IMG/VR virus record: IMGVR_UViG_3300028558_000016
Location: 1 to 64,000 of that record
DNA: 64,000 nucleotides
Direction: 5' to 3' (one strand)
The notes under the pieces are model-generated. The model saw nothing but the letters and a program-made list of their open reading frames with translations. It was not told where the DNA came from and did no database searches. Positions within the stretch are counted from its first letter, which is position 1, and every line of letters begins with the position of its first letter. Shown one piece after another: positions 3,356-14,475 of the stretch. The translations under genes were made by a program, and so were the position numbers.

Positions 3356-3646
3356 TTAAAATAATCCATTCTCGAGTATGTCAACGTGTTTCTTCAAAAC
3401 ATCTCCGTGACAACTTGACGGTTTGCACCAACATCCTAAAGTTTTTCCTTTTAATTCTCCCAATCGATCCATCAGGTCTTTATTGTTCAAAAGGTATTCC
3501 TCGTATTTTTCAATTGCTTCCTTTCTCGAGGAAACCTTAAACTCAGCAAGAGTTCCCTCTTTATGAGAATAAGGATTTCCCCAAATGGAAGGACGTCCAA
3601 TATAGACGTCGTACTTATCTTTCTTACAGTGGACAACTTTACACAT
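3356..3646 (-). CDS. DUF4326 domain protein
   Basis: VVHCKK..DVYIGRPSIWGNPY...LKGKTLGCWCKP..CHGDVL. Confidence 0.85.
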   Translation of the reverse strand: MCKVVHCKKDKYDVYIGRPSIWGNPYSHKEGTLAEFKVSSRKEAIEKYEEYLLNNKDLMDRLGELKGKTLGCWCKPSSCHGDVLKKHVDILENGLF

Positions 3647-4427: not shown

Positions 4428-5015
4428 CTACTTAAGTTTCTTTTTCTTTGTCAATTCTATTAATTTCTCTCTTGCCAATTGTTGTTCAACATAATCAGCG
4501 ATAATTACTATAGTTGAATCGCTTATCCACATGTGGCTTCTTCCGTTCACAGTAAGAGAAAAATCTCCATCACTTGGATCAAGAACAACCTCTGTTATCT
4601 TCTTGATTGGATTGTGCTTCTCTTTATCTTTCGCATCTCGTTCTAACGAGAATTTTGCCATTATGTCGCTGTTCCATTTCTTTGCATTTTTCTTGCTTTC
4701 TCCGGTGTAATTGAAATACTCAACATATTCTTTCAAAGGATTTCCTCCGTTTGCATTATTCAAACCACCTTTTAAAGTGTTTGCGTCTTCCATAATGACG
4801 TTTAAGTTTGTCCAGTCCTTCACCTTCTTCCAATTCTTATTCACATACACCTTCGCACATTCAGCAACTATTTGCATTGCTGCAATGTGTTGTCTATATT
4901 CGTTGTAGAAATTAGATGTCACAGAAAATTTTGAAGATTGCACTGTCTTTTCGTTTTCCTTGTCAGTCATCGAAACCGGGCGCATCATCATTCCATATAT
5001 CTCATTCTTTTTCAT
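4428..5015 (-). CDS. Hypothetical protein
   Basis: 195 aa ORF with phage-like codon composition. Confidence 0.7.
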   Translation of the reverse strand: MKKNEIYGMMMRPVSMTDKENEKTVQSSKFSVTSNFYNEYRQHIAAMQIVAECAKVYVNKNWKKVKDWTNLNVIMEDANTLKGGLNNANGGNPLKEYVEYFNYTGESKKNAKKWNSDIMAKFSLERDAKDKEKHNPIKKITEVVLDPSDGDFSLTVNGRSHMWISDSTIVIIADYVEQQLAREKLIELTKKKKLK

Positions 5016-5271
5016 CTTCTTTTATTGTTAGGTCGATTTCTACTATCTTCCATGTCAAACATTCTTCGAGATTCTCCACAAAAACAGGATGAACCTGATT
5101 ATCTCCTTTTTCTTTTCTCAACCAAACACCTTTGTTCCATTGAGAAACCCACCAGCCTATAGTTCCATCTGGTGCTTTAACTTTAATTTTATTTAAACCG
5201 CCAAATCCTTCAGGAAGATCAGCAATGGTTTTTATCTCCTTGCCTTCAAGAATTATCTTTTTGTTTTTCAT
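5002..5271 (-). CDS. Hypothetical protein
   Basis: 89 aa ORF directly downstream of the last tRNA. Confidence 0.65.
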   Translation of the reverse strand: MKNKKIILEGKEIKTIADLPEGFGGLNKIKVKAPDGTIGWWVSQWNKGVWLRKEKGDNQVHPVFVENLEECLTWKIVEIDLTIKEDEKE

Positions 5272-5297
5272 AAAAGTAAATGTAATAAAAAATTTTG

Positions 5298-5370
5298 AGC
5301 CGATGACAGGGATCGAACCTGCGACCTCCTCTTTACGAAAGAGGCGCTCTACCAGCTGAGCTACATCGGC
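5298..5370 (-). tRNA. tRNA-Thr(CGT)
   Basis: GCCGATG acceptor, GCTC/GAGC D-stem, CCTCT-TTCGTAA-AGAGG anticodon arm, GCAGG-TTCGATC-CCTGT T-arm. Confidence 0.95.
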
Positions 5371-5374
5371 AAAT

Positions 5375-5457
5375 GAAACCGAGCTTTTATTTAGGGACTT
5401 AAGGCAGGTTGCTCTGCTCTGATATTTGCCCAGGAGAATCTTACTCCTATCGGTTTC
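5375..5457 (-). ncRNA. Candidate structured small RNA (element D) in the tRNA array
   Basis: 8-bp closing stem GAAACCGA/TCGGTTTC enclosing the hairpins TAGGAG/CTCCTG and GGCA/TGCC. Confidence 0.4.
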
Positions 5458-5547
5458 TCATGGCTTGTCGTCCTGAAACATTTTGTATACAAGCCAACCC
5501 ATCACAATAACTGCAATGACAATAACTATGTAACAAAATATATCCAT
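5458..5547 (-). CDS. 29-aa single-TM micropeptide
   Basis: Manual translation MDIFCYIVIVIAVIVMGWLVYKMFQDDKP*, lying between RNA genes. Confidence 0.45.
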   Translation of the reverse strand: MDIFCYIVIVIAVIVMGWLVYKMFQDDKP

Positions 5548-5548
5548 G

Positions 5549-5634
5549 TGCAGTAGGTGAGATTCGAACTCACAACCCCCTGATTGGAAGTCAGGTGCTC
5601 TATGCTTTCGCGTCCAATTAGGAGCTACTACTGC
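5549..5634 (-). tRNA. Atypical tRNA with TCC (Gly) anticodon, enlarged D-loop, Lys/Arg-like body
   Basis: GCAGTAG/CTACTGC acceptor with A73, 21-nt D-loop containing GC-GAAA-GC, anticodon arm CCTGA-CTTCCAA-TCAGG. Confidence 0.8.
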
Positions 5635-5660
5635 AAGTGCGAACTTTCCATCGCATTAAT

Positions 5661-5720
5661 TGGAGCAACCTCAGTTAACTGATTCGCATTTCTGCGAGGG
5701 GGGAGTTAACCTCTGGTTGC
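5661..5720 (-). ncRNA. CCA-ended hairpin RNA (element A)
   Basis: GCAACC..GTTAAC..TCGCA-GAAA-TGCGA..GTTAAC..GGTTGC-T-CCA. Confidence 0.6.
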
Positions 5721-5725
5721 GTAAT

Positions 5726-5773
5726 TGGAGCCGAGGGGCCGTTCTCCAACGGTGAGTTCCCTTTCAACTCGGC
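5726..5773 (-). ncRNA. CCA-ended hairpin RNA (element B)
   Basis: GCCGAG..GGG..CCGTT-GGAG-AACGG-CCC-CTCGGC-T-CCA. Confidence 0.6.
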
Positions 5774-5778
5774 ATGTG

Positions 5779-5869
5779 CGGGGAAGATTGGAATCGAACC
5801 AATTAGTTTGATTTGCAGAAGACATTCTTTTTAAACAGAATGGTGCTCAGCCACCCGAGCATCTTCCCC
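5779..5869 (-). tRNA. Aberrant tRNA (Cys GCA-like remnant) with inserted hairpin; possible pseudo-tRNA
   Basis: GGGGAAG/CTTCCCC acceptor, GCTC/GAGC D-stem, ATTGG-TTCGATT-CCAAT T-arm. The central region has a CATTCT/AGAATG hairpin followed by CT-GCA-AA-TCAAA-CTA. Confidence 0.6.
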
Positions 5870-5874
5870 TTTTA

Positions 5875-6057
5875 TTATTTTCTCTTTCTCTCTTCGTCTA
5901 AATATCTATCATGTTCGTCTTTTGAATAGATCTCATAGTAACCACATTTTACTTTGTAATAAAATGGTGACATGTATTTCCATTCCTTGTTAACATCAAT
6001 GAATTTAGATTTTTCTAAAATCTGATTTTCCTCATCCGTCGGTTTGATTGTAATCAT
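5875..6057 (-). CDS. Hypothetical protein
   Basis: Track ORF 5875..6120; the in-frame ATG at 6057 (MITIKPT...) is the likelier start. Confidence 0.5.
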   Translation of the reverse strand: MITIKPTDEENQILEKSKFIDVNKEWKYMSPFYYKVKCGYYEIYSKDEHDRYLDEERKRK

Positions 6058-6195
6058 CGTTTTGTTTTTAGTTATTAAATAGGATGGGAAAACTTTAAGC
6101 GATAGTCTTTCGACAGGCAAGTTATTTTTTCATCGATGATTGATCAAGTCACCTCAAAATAAAATACTTTTCTACACTTCAGCACTTTCCCTCTG

Positions 6196-6268
6196 AGCGG
6201 AAAACGGGGCTCGAACCCGCGACCTTAACCTTGGCAAGGTTACGCTCTACCAACTGAGCTATTTCCGC
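6196..6268 (-). tRNA. tRNA-Gly(GCC)
   Basis: GCGGAAA acceptor, U73, TAACC-TTGCCAA-GGTTA; canonical cloverleaf. Confidence 0.95.
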
Positions 6269-6269
6269 A

Positions 6270-6400
6270 TGGTGCAGTGTAATTAAAAGGGTTGGACTTA
6301 TCTTCCATTCGTCAATGGCTCTTACCAACTTTCGATGTCACGATTAATTTTAAGCGCAAAACGATTCTATTGTCGAATTTTCTATTTGCGCCGACACTGC
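6270..6400 (-). ncRNA. 131-nt multi-stem RNA with 7-bp acceptor-like stem and ACCA end (element C)
   Basis: GCAGTGT/ACACTGC-A-CCA closing; internal stems GCGCAAA/TTTGCGC, AATTAA/TTAATT, GTTGG/CCAAC, CCATT-GACG-AATGG. Confidence 0.6.
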
Positions 6401-6407
6401 ATTTTTG

Positions 6408-6480
6408 AGCGGGAGACGAGGTTCGAACTCGCGACCTATAGCTTGGAAGGCTATCGCTCTACCAACTGAGCTACTCCCGC
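6408..6480 (-). tRNA. tRNA-Gly(TCC)
   Basis: GCGGGAG acceptor, U73, ATAGC-CTTCCAA-GCTAT; canonical. Confidence 0.95.
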
Positions 6481-6518
6481 GTGCGGACATTGTTTCGGGT
6501 ACAACGTCCAAAACCTAA

Positions 6519-6592
6519 TGGGGCCAGGATCGAACTCGCGTCCGACGAATGGAAGCTAATGAGGCCATCCAAACCGCTCATTATCGCCTGGC
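6519..6592 (-). ncRNA. 74-nt CCA-ended tRNA-like RNA lacking canonical arms (element E)
   Basis: GCCAGG/CCTGGC-C-CCA closing, TAATGAG/CTCATTA hairpin, GAGTTCGATC T-loop-like motif without a T-stem. Confidence 0.55.
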
Positions 6593-6645
6593 ATTTGTTG
6601 ATGATACACAACATTATATACCGACTGTATAAAAATGTTTTAATG

Positions 6646-6718
6646 TGACCCCGGTGGGGATCGAACCCACAACCACCTGATTAAGAGTCAGGAGCTCCAC
6701 CAATTGAGCTACAGAGTC
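6646..6718 (-). tRNA. tRNA-Lys(CTT)
   Basis: GACTCTG/CGGGGTC acceptor, CCTGA-CTCTTAA-TCAGG. Confidence 0.95.
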
Positions 6719-6748
6719 ATTTTGTTGATGCAATACGTCAAAGATCGT

Positions 6749-6973
6749 TCATTTCATGAAAAGATGTTTAATTCTTTCCATATCTACTTCAATAGTTTTA
6801 ATGTTCAACTTCTCTCCAGTCTTTTTAAAATGATCATACCAAAGTCTAACCTTTTCAGATTTTATTATCTGACCATTATAATTTTTCCTTTTCAACCATT
6901 CCTTTCCAAAATATAAAATTCGTTTTTCTGTTATTCTCGAATTCATTATATGTTTAAAAACTTTTTCAATCAT
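6749..6973 (-). CDS. Hypothetical protein within the tRNA array
   Basis: 74 aa ORF fitting exactly between two tRNAs. Confidence 0.55.
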   Translation of the reverse strand: MIEKVFKHIMNSRITEKRILYFGKEWLKRKNYNGQIIKSEKVRLWYDHFKKTGEKLNIKTIEVDMERIKHLFMK

Positions 6974-6974
6974 G

Positions 6975-7059
6975 TAGCGCTGGTGAGACTCGAACTCACA
7001 CTACCGTTAAGGAACCCGCTTATGAGGCGGGCACAATTACCACATCTGTTCACAGCGCT
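6975..7059 (-). tRNA. tRNA with CAT anticodon on a class II (long variable arm) scaffold
   Basis: AGCGCTG/CAGCGCT, A73, CCCGC-CTCATAA-GCGGG, 15-nt variable region, GTGAG-TTCGAGT-CTCAC. Confidence 0.85.
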
Positions 7060-7101
7060 ATCTCGTCTGCTTCTTTGTAGGCCCCGTACTATATCTACAA
7101 A

Positions 7102-7371
7102 TCATTTGGTGGGGCTGTCGGAAACAGCAGACTTTACTTTATTTTCTTTCTTATACGTCTTCAAGAATTCCAAAGCATTTTGCAATTCTTCGACCCTGTT
7201 CTTGTTAGAAGGAATGCTTCCATTTGCCTGTCTAACAGTCATCGGATCCGATGACGATAAATTCTTTTCAAAGAACTCTAAATTTCTTTCTTCCATTAAG
7301 AGTCTTTCTCTTAATAATTTTGCCACGTATGGCATCGGATCATATTGTCCTCTTTCTTCTTGTGTCTTCAT
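7102..7371 (-). CDS. Hypothetical protein within the tRNA array
   Basis: 89 aa ORF starting 2 nt after the CCA of the upstream tRNA. Confidence 0.6.
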   Translation of the reverse strand: MKTQEERGQYDPMPYVAKLLRERLLMEERNLEFFEKNLSSSDPMTVRQANGSIPSNKNRVEELQNALEFLKTYKKENKVKSAVSDSPTK

Positions 7372-7372
7372 T

Positions 7373-7464
7373 TGGTGCGCCCGGAGGGATTCGAACCCCC
7401 GTTGGTGTTATTCACACGTCTGATTAAAAGTCAGGACCATTCGGCCAGCTATGGGAACGGACGC
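7373..7464 (-). tRNA. tRNA with TTT (Lys) anticodon and long variable arm
   Basis: GCGTCCG/CGGGCGC-A-CCA, CTGA-CTTTTAA-TCAG, V-arm GTGT-GAATA-ACAC, GGGGG-TTCGAAT-CCCTC. Confidence 0.85.
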
Positions 7465-7478
7465 ATTTGTTTTTATTG

Positions 7479-7552
7479 TGCGCCCGGTTGGGTTCGAACC
7501 AACGACCCCCTGATTAAAAGTCAGGTGCATCTACCAGCTGAGCTACGAGCGC
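7479..7552 (-). tRNA. tRNA-Lys(TTT)
   Basis: GCGCTCG/CGGGCGC, CCTGA-CTTTTAA-TCAGG; canonical. Confidence 0.95.
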
Positions 7553-7774
7553 AAATATTTGGATATGGAAATCCTCTTGCATCTCGTATTTCAGCGAGAT
7601 GCCTTTACCGTTTATATTTCATTTTAGTTTTCATTATCATTATATTTTTTAAAAGAACAGAATACGTTTTTTACCTTTTCATTAAAATTGAAATGCTCGT
7701 TAGAGCTTGTTTGTTTTGCTGTACGTATTCTTTTTTCTTTTTAATTTCTACCACCATTCAGGATGCTTTTGTTT

Positions 7775-7880
7775 TGGCAAAGATTGGATTCGAACCAATG
7801 ACCTCTCGTTTACTTTCCTTAACAATGTTTCCATTGACGGGGATTTCAGGCGAGCGCTCTACCAACTGAGCTACTTATCC
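7775..7880 (-). tRNA. tRNA-Phe(GAA) with a 33-nt insertion after position 37 (intron-like)
   Basis: Standard D- and T-arms. Anticodon arm CTCG-C-CT-GAA-A-[33 nt including CAATG-GAAA-CATTG]-A-A-CGAG; the acceptor stem has two mismatches. Confidence 0.7.
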
Positions 7881-7908
7881 TTTTGTAATGCTGCATGCAT
7901 CCTTTTTG

Positions 7909-7981
7909 AGCCGAGAACCGGGGTCGAACCGGTGACCTTCCGCTTACAAGGCGGGTGCTCTACCAACTGAGCTATCTCGGC
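7909..7981 (-). tRNA. tRNA-Thr(TGT)
   Basis: GCCGAGA/TCTCGGC, CCCGC-CTTGTAA-GCGGA. Confidence 0.95.
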
Positions 7982-7984
7982 AAT

Positions 7985-8119
7985 TTACAAATATTCGTTC
8001 TTGTTACACTCAAAAAACAAAACCCACAACTCGTGAATTCTCTCATTCACTTCATCATTTCCATTTTGTCTCTTGTTTAACAAAGACATCAATTCGTTTA
8101 CTATGTCATCCTTTTTCAT
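7985..8119 (-). CDS. 44-aa hypothetical protein between Thr tRNAs
   Basis: Manual translation MKKDDIVNELMSLLNKRQNGNDEVNERIHELWVLFFECNKNEYL*. Confidence 0.45.
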   Translation of the reverse strand: MKKDDIVNELMSLLNKRQNGNDEVNERIHELWVLFFECNKNEYL

Positions 8120-8122
8120 TTG

Positions 8123-8195
8123 AGCCTACAACCGGGATCGAACCGGTCACCTCATCCTTACCAAGGATGTGTTCTACCAACTGAACTATGTGGGC
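8123..8195 (-). tRNA. tRNA-Thr(GGT)
   Basis: GCCCACA/TGTAGGC, CATCC-TTGGTAA-GGATG. Confidence 0.95.
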
Positions 8196-8317
8196 AATGT
8201 CTCCGATCGTAAAAATAATCTCTCAAATATTATCAAGATCATTTCCATTCTTTATTAAGCGGTCGGACACGCTACTACTAAATCCAAAAGTTGCAACTTC
8301 TGAATTTTTCATCTTTG

Positions 8318-8413
8318 AAGCGGGAGTGAGATTCGAACTCACGTTCTCTTTCGAGTTGAGGCTTATGAGGCCCTGCTGGCGTTTTGCAACTTCCATCTCC
8401 AGTCGATCCCGCA
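8318..8413 (-). tRNA. Initiator-like tRNA(CAT) with expanded D-loop and a V-arm
   Basis: T1:T72 mismatch plus GCGGGA/TCCCGC, D-stem CTGG/CCAG with long loop, GGGC-CTCATAA-GCCT, V-arm CTC-GAAA-GAG. Confidence 0.75.
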
Positions 8414-8419
8414 ATGTGT

Positions 8420-8541
8420 GCCGCTTCCTGGACCCTATCACCAGGATTTTCTTTGGACTACAGAAGAGAGATTCGCCAATTTTTTTCCATAGAATTAAAC
8501 CATATACGGCGCTTTTCTACACTCTCAACTTTCGCAAGCGG
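8420..8541 (-). ncRNA. Candidate structured RNA (element F)
   Basis: Closing CCGCT/AGCGG; internal GAGAG/CTCTC, CGCCG/TGGCG and TCCTGG/CCAGGA stems. Confidence 0.4.
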
Positions 8542-8552
8542 ACTTTTATTTG

Positions 8553-8624
8553 TAGCGGGAGATGGATTCGAACCACCGACCTCAGGGTTATGAGCCCTGC
8601 GAGCTACCCCTGCTCTATCCCGCA
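8553..8624 (-). tRNA. tRNA-fMet(CAT)
   Basis: 1:72 mismatch, three consecutive G-C pairs in the anticodon stem (CAGGG-CTCATAA-CCCTG), A73. Confidence 0.95.
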
Positions 8625-8631
8625 ATATTTA

Positions 8632-8747
8632 TTGGAACGCATACCAACTTCGCAAGAAGTTTCGGGTCAACAGTGACTCTTGTCAAGCTGCCTCCTACAT
8701 GATTGATCAAGCTCCATTCTTTCAGGGAGCACCATGGGCGGTTCCAA
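8632..8747 (-). ncRNA. Candidate structured RNA (element G), first RNA after the attenuator
   Basis: TTGGAAC/GTTCCAA closing; GCTCC/GGAGC, TGAC/GTCA and AACTT/AAGTT hairpins. Confidence 0.45.
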
Positions 8748-8782
8748 TTTTTTAATTTCAATAATTTCTTCAAAGAACAAGA

Positions 8783-8814
8783 CAAAAAAAATCCCAAACG
8801 TTTGGTTTGGGATT
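8783..8814 (-). terminator. Intrinsic terminator of the leader (attenuator)
   Basis: AATCCCAAAC-CAAAC-GTTTGGGATT 10-bp stem running into a U8 tract (the first two U also close the stem). Confidence 0.9.
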
Positions 8815-8837
8815 CGTAATTTCGTTATTAGTTAACG

Positions 8838-8933
8838 TCATTCGCACATCCCAAAACACATAGGCTTACCTTTCCCAGTTTTCGTGGTAGTAGTTGTACC
8901 TGTAGTTATTTTGAATATTTGTTGCGAATTCAT
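8838..8933 (-). CDS. Attenuator leader peptide (31 aa; Thr/Gly/Lys/Met/Cys/Phe-rich)
   Basis: ATG 8933 gives MNSQQIFKITTGTTTTTKTGKGKPMCFGMCE-TGA. It has 8 Thr codons using all four ACN; TTTGGGAT in codons 27-29 is complementary to ATCCCAAA in the terminator 5' arm. Confidence 0.8.
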   Translation of the reverse strand: MNSQQIFKITTGTTTTTKTGKGKPMCFGMCE

Positions 8934-8989
8934 GACGTTTTAATTTGTTATTCTACTCTATATACTTATCTTTGTTTCAATTTCTTTTA

Positions 8990-8997
8990 CAAATGTA
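8990..8997 (-). promoter_or_regulatory. Bacteroidota sigma70-type -7 element upstream of the leader
   Basis: TACATTTG matches TAnnTTTG, about 55 nt upstream of the leader ATG. Confidence 0.65.
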
Positions 8998-9094
8998 GAA
9001 CTTTTTTTAATAGCTTTAAAATAAATTTTTCGATGTGTGATTATTTATTCCATTGAAACTCACGTAATCTATTGAAAACTAATAGAATATAAGC

Positions 9095-9340
9095 TTAAAA
9101 TTTTGTGAATAATTTTATGATTGTATCCTTTGGATTGAATGGTTTTTCGATTGAATTGTAAGAAACGTAACTTACCTTTAAAACTTTTTCATTTTCTTTT
9201 ATGACAACGTTGCCATCAAGATCTGAATAATAAATTGCTTTTTCTGTTTCAACCTTAACACCAGTTAATGGCTCTTTTGTTTTGTTATCTACAAATAGAA
9301 TATTAAAAATCAATGATGAAGCAATAAATAGAATTTTCAT
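9095..9340 (-). CDS. CarboxypepD_reg-like domain protein with signal peptide
   Basis: VDNKTKEPLTGVKV...SDLDGN...VSYVSY pattern typical of Bacteroidota. Confidence 0.6.
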   Translation of the reverse strand: MKILFIASSLIFNILFVDNKTKEPLTGVKVETEKAIYYSDLDGNVVIKENEKVLKVSYVSYNSIEKPFNPKDTIIKLFTKF

Positions 9341-9439
9341 TGGAATTTACGTTTGTTTTATCTATGTTAAGTTTTTGAGTATTTTCGTATTAAATCATAC
9401 TTGTTAACATTATGATAATATATAAATAAACTATTCTTA

Positions 9440-9775
9440 ATGATGAAAAATATACTACTCATAGCATTCATTCTTATGAGCTCATTCGTGTTAGCTCAGA
9501 AGAAATTTGAAAAGAAATTCACAAATGGTTTGATCGAAGAAACAGGATTCTTTGACAAGACTGGTTTGAAAGACAGCGTGTGGATCTCTTACAATGAAAA
9601 AGGAATTCTAATAGGAGAAGGACACTTCTCACACGGAATTAAAACAGGAATCTGGAAGACCTTCTATGAAGACGGTAAAATAATGTTTGAGATACCTTAT
9701 GTAGAAGGACACAAAAAAGGAGAAGGCAAACAATTCAGCCAAGAAGGAGAATTGATTGCCTCTAAAGATTATTAA
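9440..9775 (+). CDS. MORN-variant repeat (YwqK-like) secreted protein
   Basis: Signal peptide, then repeats of G.W..Y.E.G. Confidence 0.7.
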   Translation: MMKNILLIAFILMSSFVLAQKKFEKKFTNGLIEETGFFDKTGLKDSVWISYNEKGILIGEGHFSHGIKTGIWKTFYEDGKIMFEIPYVEGHKKGEGKQFSQEGELIASKDY

Positions 9776-10374
9776 AATATTTTGTGAATAACTTTATTTT
9801 CTAACTTGTCTCTTACCAACGCAGCCTTCTCATATTCTTCTTTGTAAACAAAGATCTCCATGAGCGTTTTCATTTGAACATCTGATAAAAGCTTCTGTCC
9901 TTCTAATGCTGTTGTGACTATTCGGTCTGCAACAAATATGTGAAAGTCATCCATGGTAGGATCATACCCATCCATTAAACATCCTTGATAGAAAGCAAAT
10001 CCTATTTGTGGATCCACAATCATGCACTGTTCAAACTTCTCTATTTTTTTCAGGTATCCCTCGAAATGATCTTCGCCATCGTCGATTTCAGCATCGATTT
10101 CAGCATCAATGTTATTATCTGGAATATCTGAAAAAACAAATGAAGGGAGAAAATCTTTTTTCGTAAAAAATAAATTAGAAAAAGCAAGTCCCCATTCTCC
10201 AGCCTTCATGTTAGCGACGTCTTTCATCGCTCTTATTAAACTCCATCCCTTTATGGGTTCTCCGTAAATCAAAAACTCATCCATGCACCTTGTTAGGTTA
10301 TTTTTGCGGGCCGCTAACCTCTGAATCGAGGTTGGAACTCGCTGTGCCAGATATTGGATTATCTGGATTTCCAA
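9772..10374 (-). CDS. Hypothetical protein with C-terminal UVR-like motif
   Basis: KEEYEKAALVRDKL at the C-terminus. Confidence 0.55.
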   Translation of the reverse strand: MEIQIIQYLAQRVPTSIQRLAARKNNLTRCMDEFLIYGEPIKGWSLIRAMKDVANMKAGEWGLAFSNLFFTKKDFLPSFVFSDIPDNNIDAEIDAEIDDGEDHFEGYLKKIEKFEQCMIVDPQIGFAFYQGCLMDGYDPTMDDFHIFVADRIVTTALEGQKLLSDVQMKTLMEIFVYKEEYEKAALVRDKLENKVIHKIF

Positions 10375-10531
10375 ACATTAGGAAAAACCCATAGTCCTTA
10401 TCAATGATTTCTGGCAGGACATCCAATGGATTAAAATCCTCGAATGTATCTTCGTTAACTGTAACGTTTTGTTCTAATCTTGCCTTTTTAATTTCTTTAG
10501 ACATTTCATTAGATTTCTTATTGCTGCTCAT
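10298..10531 (-). CDS. Hypothetical protein
   Basis: 77 aa ORF that overlaps the downstream ORF start; boundaries uncertain. Confidence 0.45.
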   Translation of the reverse strand: MSSNKKSNEMSKEIKKARLEQNVTVNEDTFEDFNPLDVLPEIIDKDYGFFLMFGNPDNPISGTASSNLDSEVSGPQK

Positions 10532-10907: not shown

Positions 10908-11900
10908 TTATGGATTTAAAATTTTCTGTACGTTAAAACAAAGACTCAATAAACAAACTATCGGGTCAATCACCAAATGTCTTTTCGATTGATGGTCTGC
11001 TGTGGTTATAAGAATATTAGGAACAAACTTAGTTCTTTCTGGATGTTTCTCTTTTAACCAATGTATGAATTCAGTTCCAATTTTTCCCATCACATCTTCT
11101 ACCATCGAAGAATAATTTGACATGATGAACTCATAATTGTCTATTGGGTTTGGTTTTCCAGCAAGAATCTTGTAAAGCTCTTCAAAGTCCCAATTCATTT
11201 CTTTTACTTTATCCTTGGTTATCTTCTTTATTCCTTGGATGTCGAATGATTGTATCTTGTTTAAGATGGATCTCATGTCAGGAAAATTCCTGTCAACCAA
11301 TTCTTGCAAAGCTTCTGGTTCTGCTGTAATTCCTATCTTATCAAGGATGTGAGTAATCCTTTTTTTCCATTCAGCCCTTACCTCATTCTCTTCTTGCTTG
11401 TTTGCAAAGTCAAAACTAATGCACTCAAATCTCGATTGAATGGATTCAGGAATCTTATTGATGTAATTACAAGTCGCAATGAACCTGCAATTCTTAGCGT
11501 ACTTTTCTATCGTTGCTCTTAATGCCTTGAAGAATTGATCAGAAGCTCCATCTATCTCATCCAATATGATTACTTTGATTGGAAGTCCATTGTCCTGCAT
11601 TGGTGCATTAGGATTAATCTCCTCTTCAAAATCTATTGCAATGCTCGAACAGAAATCAGTTATCTTCGTTCTGATGACGTCAACGCTTGATTCGTCAGAC
11701 ACATTTATGTACATGTTAGGAGATCCTGCAATCAGTACTTTTGCGGCAGATGTTTTACCTGTCCCAGGAGATCCGTACAGAAGAACGTTCTGCATCAATC
11801 TTCCATTTCCAAGAGAGGTTCTAACTCTCTCAGTCAATATCAAATGTTCAAACCTTTTAGGCCTGAGTTTCTCCGTTAGTAAGTCCTGTACTGTTGCCAT
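10908..11900 (-). CDS. Sliding clamp loader subunit (T4 gp44/RFC-like)
   Basis: TEKLRPK, GSPGTGKT, ILDEID, FIATCN, IQSRF, FPDMRS. Confidence 0.92.
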   Translation of the reverse strand: MATVQDLLTEKLRPKRFEHLILTERVRTSLGNGRLMQNVLLYGSPGTGKTSAAKVLIAGSPNMYINVSDESSVDVIRTKITDFCSSIAIDFEEEINPNAPMQDNGLPIKVIILDEIDGASDQFFKALRATIEKYAKNCRFIATCNYINKIPESIQSRFECISFDFANKQEENEVRAEWKKRITHILDKIGITAEPEALQELVDRNFPDMRSILNKIQSFDIQGIKKITKDKVKEMNWDFEELYKILAGKPNPIDNYEFIMSNYSSMVEDVMGKIGTEFIHWLKEKHPERTKFVPNILITTADHQSKRHLVIDPIVCLLSLCFNVQKILNP

Positions 11901-12914: not shown

Positions 12915-13272
12915 TCTTCATCAAGAAAACGTAATGCAATCTGTAATCTTCTACTTCGTTTTTCTCATTCAATGATCCAGTCCCCAATGGTTCTATCTTG
13001 TAACCGTTCATCATCAATTCATTGAACATTTGTCCTCTCGCATCAGAGAAAGGTCTTACCTCTGCGTAAATACCTTCTTGGTCCATGCTTATGTCAGCAA
13101 ATCCACAAGTACTGTCTCCGTTTAATGGAACATCAAATACTGGAATTTTATACTGATCTGTTAGAATGTCTAACGAGCAAAACATTTGTTTTGGTAATTC
13201 AGACACTTCGTGGTGCAAGTAAATTCTTCCATTCTGATTCTCTTTTCCAAATTCAATCAATGTTACTTTCAT
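12904..13272 (-). CDS. Prohead-protease (gp21/S77)-like protein, apparently degenerate
   Basis: ENQNGRIY motif, ARGQMF..L, LGTGSL, DYRL; the catalytic His and Ser motifs are not seen. Confidence 0.45.
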   Translation of the reverse strand: MKVTLIEFGKENQNGRIYLHHEVSELPKQMFCSLDILTDQYKIPVFDVPLNGDSTCGFADISMDQEGIYAEVRPFSDARGQMFNELMMNGYKIEPLGTGSLNEKNEVEDYRLHYVFLMKNEE

Positions 13273-13290
13273 TTTTTAAGAAAGTTATTT

Positions 13291-14475
13291 TTATATTGCA
13301 ATAGGCGCTTTAATCGCCGGGTGACTTTTGTATCCAACAAATTCAAAGTTCTCATACTTATATTCAATGATATGACCATTGTCACCATGCAAAGAGCTAT
13401 AAACTGTAGGTGGTTTTTTAAGTCTAAGCTTACATAATTCCATTGGCTCTCTATTTAATTGTTCATCGACTTGATCGAAATGATTTACGTATATGTGACA
13501 GTCTCCTCCGTTAAATACAAGCTCCTCAGGAACCATATTAACAGACTGAGCAATCATTTCCAATAACAATCCATAAGAAGCAATATTAAATGGCAATCCC
13601 AAAAACAAATCAACTGAACGTTGTTGCCACATTAGTGATATAGCACGTTTAGGAACATTCTGTTGGTCCAATTCAAAATCTTTCCAATCACTTTTATCTC
13701 CAGCCCAATTTTTAATGAACCACTCATTTCTTTCTTCTGTACTCATCTCACGCGTCCAACATTGGAATCCATAATGACATGGAGGAAGAAGCATCTTGTC
13801 TATCTCGGCAACGTTCCATGCATTCACCATCAATCGTCTTGAGTCTGGATTAGTCTTTAAGTCCTGTATCAAACGAAGTATTTGATCATACCACAGAGAA
13901 CCAAAGTCTTCTTTACCGGTATCTTCGTCCTCGTAATGCAACCATCCCTGCCACTGTCTCCATTGTTTTCCATAAACTGGTCCAAGCTCTCCCCATACAT
14001 CAGAAAATGAATCACGTGAAGCTGCAAACAATCCACTCAATTCGGATTCTTTTATTTTTTCAACAAACTCTTCTAATGTTAACGGAGGATGTTTTTCCAA
14101 TTGTTCTCTAATATATTTCACTGACATTGCATCTTCGGTTGTATCGGCTCTTCTAATAGAAGCCTCTAAGTCTTCTTTTAATTTTTCATGATGCTTCATG
14201 TAATTCTGCCAAGGCCATTCATTCCAAATGTTAACTCCATTGTCGACGAGATATTTTATGTTGTGTCCTCCTTGAAGGAACCACAGCAATTCATGGATGA
14301 CGCTTTTAGTGTGAATCTTCTTTGTCGTTAACAATGGAAATCCATCTTGCATGTTGAACTTTAAAGTTCGACCAAAAACAGAAACTGTTCCAGTTCCGGT
14401 TCTGTCAGATTTTCTAACTCCTTTTTCTCTAACTTCTTTTAAAAGATCGAGATATGCTTTATCTGTGTTGTTCAT
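13291..14475 (-). CDS. thyA: Thymidylate synthase with insertions
   Basis: DRTGTGT, FPLLTTKK, LGPVYGKQWR, NPDSRRL, LPPCH, QRSVDLFLGLPFNIASY. Confidence 0.97.
   Translation of the reverse strand: MNNTDKAYLDLLKEVREKGVRKSDRTGTGTVSVFGRTLKFNMQDGFPLLTTKKIHTKSVIHELLWFLQGGHNIKYLVDNGVNIWNEWPWQNYMKHHEKLKEDLEASIRRADTTEDAMSVKYIREQLEKHPPLTLEEFVEKIKESELSGLFAASRDSFSDVWGELGPVYGKQWRQWQGWLHYEDEDTGKEDFGSLWYDQILRLIQDLKTNPDSRRLMVNAWNVAEIDKMLLPPCHYGFQCWTREMSTEERNEWFIKNWAGDKSDWKDFELDQQNVPKRAISLMWQQRSVDLFLGLPFNIASYGLLLEMIAQSVNMVPEELVFNGGDCHIYVNHFDQVDEQLNREPMELCKLRLKKPPTVYSSLHGDNGHIIEYKYENFEFVGYKSHPAIKAPIAI

Follow-up and report, generated by a model that had tools for sequence, protein, structure and literature searches.

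We found that a tRNA gene array of a huge phage is preceded by a 31-codon reading frame, a terminator hairpin and a competing hairpin, and that the codons of this frame are those read by the tRNAs behind it. Although this rests on sequence and comparative evidence without any experiment, the phage probably measures tRNA supply through ribosome speed and makes more tRNA when decoding is slow. We analyzed a 64,000-nt stretch (hereafter the window, positions 1 to 64,000 of IMG/VR record IMGVR_UViG_3300028558_000016), which comes from a 482-kb contig. Nearby genes include a gp44-type clamp loader (10908-11900), small secreted-looking proteins with CarboxypepD_reg and MORN domains, and a MazG-like protein, and relatives carry a T4-type portal and thymidylate synthase. 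The nearest GenBank phages by clamp loader are the Prevotella Lak megaphages, at about 40% identity, and a Bacteroidota host is therefore likely.

All elements lie on the minus strand, where a preliminary description had placed them. A TAcaTTTG box is at 8997-8990, and an unannotated ORF of 31 codons runs from ATG at 8933 to TGA at 8840-8838. The hairpin, GAATCCCAAAC / loop CAAAC / GTTTGGGATTT, lies at 8815-8789, has 11 pairs, the outermost a G-U, and folds at -13.3 kcal/mol. The run of 8 T is at 8791-8784. The preliminary description had counted 10 bp, ended the element at 8783, which is a G and one base too far, and given a gap of about 25 nt from the stop codon to the stem, which is in fact 22 nt. 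The segment TTTGGGAT at 8855-8848 (codons 27-29) is a copy of the terminator's 3' arm and is complementary to ATCCCAAA of the 5' arm (8815-8805), the strand shared by the two alternative structures. The hairpin is the only strong terminator-like site on that strand in 4500-10500, and the region folds better than all 200 shuffles (z = -3.3). The leader/5'-arm duplex (-13.2 kcal/mol) is in the top 0.6% of same-length windows of the window sequence. Downstream on the same strand, from 8624 to 5297, ARAGORN finds eleven tRNA genes: Met, Thr(GGU), Thr(UGU), Lys(UUU) x2, Met, Lys(CUU), Gly(UCC), Gly(GCC), Asn and Thr(CGU). Rfam finds eleven as well, two of them tRNA-like genes that ARAGORN does not call. 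The array also holds one conserved structured RNA and three small ORFs.

TAcaTTTG matches the Bacteroidota sigma-A -7 promoter consensus TAnnTTTG (PMC7366714). Alone, this motif carries little information here and is not enriched in the window as a whole, with 82 matches against 72 expected. Its support comes from being kept at a similar distance upstream of the related leaders of both classes described below (in one relative, L013, it lies much further upstream), and from being the only copy on that strand between 8997 and 3092. A second conserved box, TTGAAACAAAGATAAG-TATATAG-AG-TAGAAT-AA at 8980-8948, may be a second or alternative promoter or a 5'-UTR element. It is identical in the three closest variants although the ORF has diverged, and it occurs only once in the window, so it is not a general promoter there. 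A GAAACA...TATATA(G)...TAtAAT pattern, 10-27 nt before the ATG, recurs before the leaders of both classes and of the GenBank phages LR756501.1 and LR745206.1, and directly before one leaderless tRNA-Met in LR745206.1 (locus L110). A sigma-70-type scan found no promoter for the leader.

To find homologues of the leader, we first scanned viral contigs for exact patterns of the terminator and the 5'-UTR box and for a loop-tolerant terminator pattern, but these returned only the same three variants. A metagenome scan added identical copies and one chance hit (L012), an exact look-up of the leader peptide found no called gene, BLAST of the region against GenBank phages hit only the tRNA-Met, and a near-identity search with one locus, L014, found nothing. 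Following clamp-loader relatives through a large protein collection gave more. Eight distinct versions head the homologous Met/Thr/Lys/Gly array, in phages whose clamp loaders are 63-100% identical to the window's, and all have an ATG-started ORF of 30-32 codons that ends 22-30 nt before a terminator. In L013 the contig ends just after the terminator, and the loci L020 and L021 lack the array. The peptide drifts, as in MSQQIITKIKGMPTTKKTSGKGKLMYLGICE, MLSLNLNTNKKTMVTTMKGGKGKIMPFGKCD and MLSTYGCIFMTGKTTNKMTFTGKGTAVYWDE, yet the frame is open in all 11 homologues tested, while both other frames carry 1-5 stops; shuffled interiors stayed open in only 7-12% of trials for these versions. The terminator helix is 96% paired across the eight versions, and two of its pairs show compensatory changes. 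A conserved GTTCTTTGAAG box of unknown function (8778-8768), which is not a TAnnTTTG match, follows the T run in six of the eight Thr/Lys/Gly/Met-class relatives.

We next compared the leader codons with the array. In the window, 19 of the 30 codons after the start encode Met, Thr, Lys, Gly or Asn, against 8.8 expected from the phage's own long ORFs (p 8.5e-5). All nine anticodon classes of the array are sampled at least once, namely ACT/ACC, ACA, ACG, AAA, AAG, GGT, GGG, AAT and ATG (simulated p 0.002). Codons 8-23 (8912-8865) are Thr, Lys and Gly codons plus ATA, and the Asn codon at position 2 and the Met codons at 25 and 29 complete the set, although a stall at these two Met codons would block rather than favour antitermination. 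The stretch GGG-AAA-GGY is invariant in all eight homologues, which fits selection on particular codons rather than on amino acids.

An independent class was found in relatives of 58-63% clamp-loader identity, which carry a Ser/Leu (plus Arg) array at the same genomic place. It is headed by unrelated leaders, such as MKKNLSLSSLLSLLSSKRDSRAMS (locus L018), MKKNLSLSLSLSLSSNRAGQAMS (L022) and MKKSLSLSLSSLSLLKGTGWTLC (L105). In the L018 leader, codons 20-22 (aGTCGGGCc) copy the 3' arm of a different terminator, GCCCGAC...GTCGGGC, and 7 of 7 anticodon classes of its array are sampled (p 1.7e-4). The Thr/Lys/Gly and Ser/Leu leaders are reciprocally specific (Fisher p 3e-6). In this class the first tRNA starts 10-16 nt after the T run, so it can only be reached by read-through. 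A scan with the start of the Ser/Leu leader found only the known contig and three chance hits (L101, L103 and L104), and 75 more distant clamp-loader loci (55% identity or less) had no tRNAs in their flanks.

To examine generality, we wrote a detector that looks upstream of any tRNA for an ATG-ORF of 12-60 codons ending just before a perfect hairpin with a T run and ignores composition. In the first set of loci it fired only before the first tRNA of arrays. In 230 kb of two GenBank huge phages, LR756501.1 (735 kb) and LR745206.1 (635 kb), it fired ten times, and each ORF mirrors the sub-array behind it. We observed MTTTQQIQQQQINQTD before three tRNA-Gln, MKTINNTSKSSSRSSSMSEIRLYS before Arg and Ser, a His/Lys/Phe/Trp/Ser-rich leader before His, Phe, Trp and Lys, ...ISIAVIGNGAGAI... 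before Ile, Gly, Met, Gly, Gly and Ala, ...SYESYYEEG... before Glu and Tyr, ...IQEQMQQIQ... before Met, Gln, Ile and Glu, and a Thr/Met/Asn/Leu/Val/Ile-rich leader before an array of just those tRNAs (29 of 37 codons); Pro/Asp and Leu modules were also among the ten. Over twelve class representatives the own array ranks first for nine, with mean z 4.45 against -0.13 off the diagonal, and 0 of 200,000 permutations reach the observed sum, although three of the twelve have weak composition p-values of 0.03-0.09. Modules are 18-fold denser within 450 nt upstream of tRNAs than elsewhere. However, some arrays in the same genomes lack a leader (the first array of locus L109 and the first tRNA-Met of L110), and phage T5 (23 tRNAs) and a Lak-B1 region (19 tRNAs) contain no module, so the design is not universal.

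These data bear on two alternatives. A chance ORF next to an ordinary terminator might be considered, as short ORFs are common in AT-rich DNA and a shuffled interior stays open in 7-26% of trials, but conservation, co-variation, the codon statistics and recurrence in unrelated sequence contradict this, and we regard it as the least likely reading. An independent small gene, encoding a functional micropeptide with its own terminator while the tRNAs use separate promoters, also seems very unlikely. The ORF is conserved and has a promoter-like box and a terminator, the Ser/Leu leaders resemble signal-peptide N-termini, and the window has a 150-nt spacer (8775-8625) before the first tRNA. Nevertheless, the peptide sequence is poorly conserved while codon class is kept, and twelve unrelated peptides each mirror the tRNAs behind them. 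In several modules the tRNA starts 7-26 nt after the terminator, which leaves no room for a separate promoter. In the window, no TAnnTTTG lies on that strand anywhere in the array, and neither TAnnTTTG nor a sigma-70-like site lies between the terminator and the first tRNA, although a phage-specific promoter in the spacer cannot be excluded for this class.

We then analyzed the antiterminator. For the first ten leaders, the best duplex between the last 45 nt of the ORF and the terminator's 5' arm (plus 10 nt of flank) is -11.6 to -15.6 kcal/mol, similar to the terminator itself, and each lies in the top 0.5-4.5% of same-length windows from its own locus. The Ser/Leu leader of L105 is weaker (p 0.06). 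Nine of the ten new modules show the same, with a combined p of 2e-9 over the ten, whereas one has no convincing antiterminator (L114 22689, p 0.47). In nearly all leaders the segment ends at, just before or just after the stop codon. Notably, the pairing follows the arm. In L019 an A-to-C change in the 5' arm is matched by T-to-G in both the leader segment and the 3' arm, so that ATCCCAAC pairs with GTTGGGAT, and in L002, L013 and L015 the pairing slides onto the co-changed 5' flank. In L025, of the Ser/Leu class, a CGG-to-TGG change (Arg to Trp) keeps the pairing through a G-U pair. The motif TTGGGAT is kept although its reading frame differs between the window and L017/L019 (tTT GGG ATg against taT TGG GAT), and the constraint is therefore on RNA, not on the peptide.

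Folding with nucleotides masked as a ribosome footprint, and with the 3' arm not yet made, gave the predicted switch. With a stall at codon 12, 4-9 nt of the 5' arm are paired to the leader in all eleven leaders, whereas with the ribosome at the stop codon none are paired and the terminator forms. Array-matching codons are 57% of the zone upstream of the last eight codons but only 27% of those eight (p 1.5e-6), which is the placement the mechanism needs. In full-length RNA the terminator is usually a few kcal/mol more stable than the antiterminator fold, so the switch has to be kinetic, as in classical attenuators. The preliminary description had likened the geometry to thrL/trpL-type attenuators, but the trp-type 1:2 hairpin this implies is predicted in the window only and is not conserved, and in most relatives the naked nascent RNA forms the antiterminator, so the untranslated default may be read-through. 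A long hairpin closing the ORF's start onto its stop, seen in the window's minimum-energy fold, is likewise not supported in relatives, where the changes are not compensated.

We also considered that the module may be an RNA-processing or stability element, in which the hairpin with its U-tract and the translated ORF control cleavage or decay of the tRNA precursor, for example as an RNase III or RNase E entry site or a protective 5' hairpin. The tRNAs must be cut out of long precursors in any case, the hairpin sits close to the first tRNA in several modules, and the GTTCTTTGAAG box follows the T run. However, the hairpins have the full intrinsic-terminator form, a 9-12-bp stem with a GC-rich core followed directly by 5-9 T, and a processing site needs neither the conserved competing pairing with the ORF's 3' end nor the placement of the matching codons. 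We consider this reading unlikely.

Taken together, the sequence-level evidence supports the interpretation in the preliminary description, and we consider it likely that this is a ribosome-mediated (leader-peptide) transcription attenuator that meters a phage tRNA operon, with translation of the ORF, termination, the kinetic competition and the physiological signal inferred. In this model, transcription starts upstream of the leader and runs through the ORF. If the codons are decoded quickly, the ribosome reaches the stop codon and covers TTTGGGAT, the 5' arm stays free, the hairpin plus U8 forms, and transcription ends before the tRNA genes. If any of those tRNAs is scarce or uncharged, the ribosome stalls 15 nt or more upstream, TTTGGGAT and its flank pair with the 5' arm as it emerges, the terminator cannot form, and RNA polymerase reads into the array. 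The tRNA product would thus feed back on its own transcription through decoding speed. Leader-peptide attenuation is considered likely in Flavobacterium (PMC9723704) and is suggested for Bacteroides 5' UTRs, so the host lineage can plausibly support it.

More broadly, and with less certainty, though we think it more probable than not, these modules may form a clade-spanning system in huge phages of Bacteroidota, in which each amino-acid-specific tRNA sub-array is headed by its own codon-matched leader and tuned separately by how fast ribosomes decode exactly those codons. This would explain why these genomes sort their tRNA genes by amino acid, and could let the phage sense and compensate for loss of particular host tRNAs during infection, including cleavage by host anticodon nucleases. 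If confirmed, huge phages would regulate their large tRNA complements by demand, set by set, rather than expressing them constitutively, a class of unannotated small ORFs would be added to phage annotation, and the leaders would offer a natural library of compact sensors of decoding speed for many codon sets. We found no prior description of such an arrangement in the literature searched, in line with the preliminary description's view that it is not a described one, and the paper that published the two GenBank genomes does not mention attenuators, leaders or terminators. As far as we are aware, tRNA genes have not been described as targets of ribosome-mediated attenuation in any cell or virus.

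Among known systems, T-box riboswitches also couple the state of a specific tRNA to a terminator/antiterminator choice upstream of translation-related genes, but they bind uncharged tRNA directly, without a ribosome, through a specifier codon and a conserved T-box sequence, neither of which is present here. We wondered whether the leader RNA, which displays the cognate codons next to a terminator/antiterminator pair, could similarly bind anticodons without a ribosome. This appears improbable, as there is no T-box match at the gathering threshold over the whole window, nor at E up to 5 over 8380-9060, the leaders are short and show no conserved specifier-loop or NCCA-binding structure, and the codons always lie in one open frame that starts with ATG and ends 19-38 nt before the stem, which only translation explains.

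The multivalent leader-peptide attenuators thrL and ilvL of enterobacterial amino-acid biosynthetic operons are closer. There too, a short translated leader carries a run of regulatory codons for more than one amino acid and is followed by an intrinsic terminator, with a mutually exclusive antiterminator whose upstream strand lies next to the leader stop codon, and ribosome position decides which forms. In contrast to thrL and ilvL, the phage design is a three-segment form without a conserved 1:2 pause or anti-antiterminator hairpin, and it shows no sequence homology, as Rfam Thr_leader (RF00506) scores 17.8 bits against a threshold of 55 (E = 1.1). A MicC match is also far below threshold. 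Up to 5-7 amino acids are sampled, at the level of individual isoacceptor codons, the element is viral, and the genes it is proposed to regulate are not enzymes but the tRNA genes themselves, with one codon-matched leader per sub-array.

Inside the tRNA arrays, we found a conserved structured RNA of about 125 nt, located at 8418-8548 of the minus strand in the window, and also at 9548-9680 in L015, 13474-13602 in L017, 10282-10412 in L019, and 8702-8838 in L002, which are loci from related phages. RNAalifold predicted 29 pairs, 19 of them with compensatory changes, and an invariant GTCCAAAG..AAATCC..GGT.ATA.GGT motif was present. This RNA has no Rfam match, and is a candidate new phage non-coding RNA co-transcribed with the tRNAs.

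A 150-nt spacer (8625-8775, minus strand) lies between the terminator and the first tRNA. It is flanked by GGAAC...GTTCC and is partly conserved in L001 and L002, two related loci, and may represent a degenerate tRNA, another RNA, or a hidden promoter. In L017, about 100 nt of the leader, comprising the 5' UTR plus the first codons, is repeated in inverted orientation roughly 300 nt downstream, between the terminator and the first tRNA (13595-13690 versus 13205-13310).

The array also contains extra tRNA-like genes on the minus strand that were not called by ARAGORN. Rfam found a 106-nt tRNA with an insert (7775-7880) and a 63-nt truncated one (5549-5611). By eye, we noticed two more degenerate CAT-anticodon-like copies, at about 8330-8420 and about 6520-6590. 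Further, three small ORFs of 89, 74, and 81 aa (7102-7371, 6749-6973, and 5875-6120, minus strand) are interspersed among the tRNA genes. They have no convincing Pfam match and would be co-transcribed with the array.

Translation genes sit inside or next to the tRNA islands of relatives (L017 17452-18639; L014 13261-13809; L109, a locus of LR756501.1, about 3400-3620), namely EF-Tu, an RF-1-like protein, and an ORF that, read by eye, ends like ribosomal protein bL12 just before an array of LR756501.1. Additionally, across the twelve loci compared (the window, L014, L015, L017, L018, L022, L109, L110, and L112-L115), 35 small-ORF-plus-terminator modules lie away from tRNA genes, and some of them could be attenuators of other genes, such as synthetases or translation factors.

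The ATA codons of the leader, kept in 7 of 8 homologues, suggest that one of the CAT tRNAs other than the first may be a lysidine-type tRNA-Ile. The remaining locus, L014, has no ATA codon in its leader, and no CAT tRNA was found in its array. The first tRNA of the array itself (8552-8624, minus strand; anticodon CAT) has, as read by eye from the sequence, three G-C pairs next to the anticodon loop, as initiator tRNAs do.
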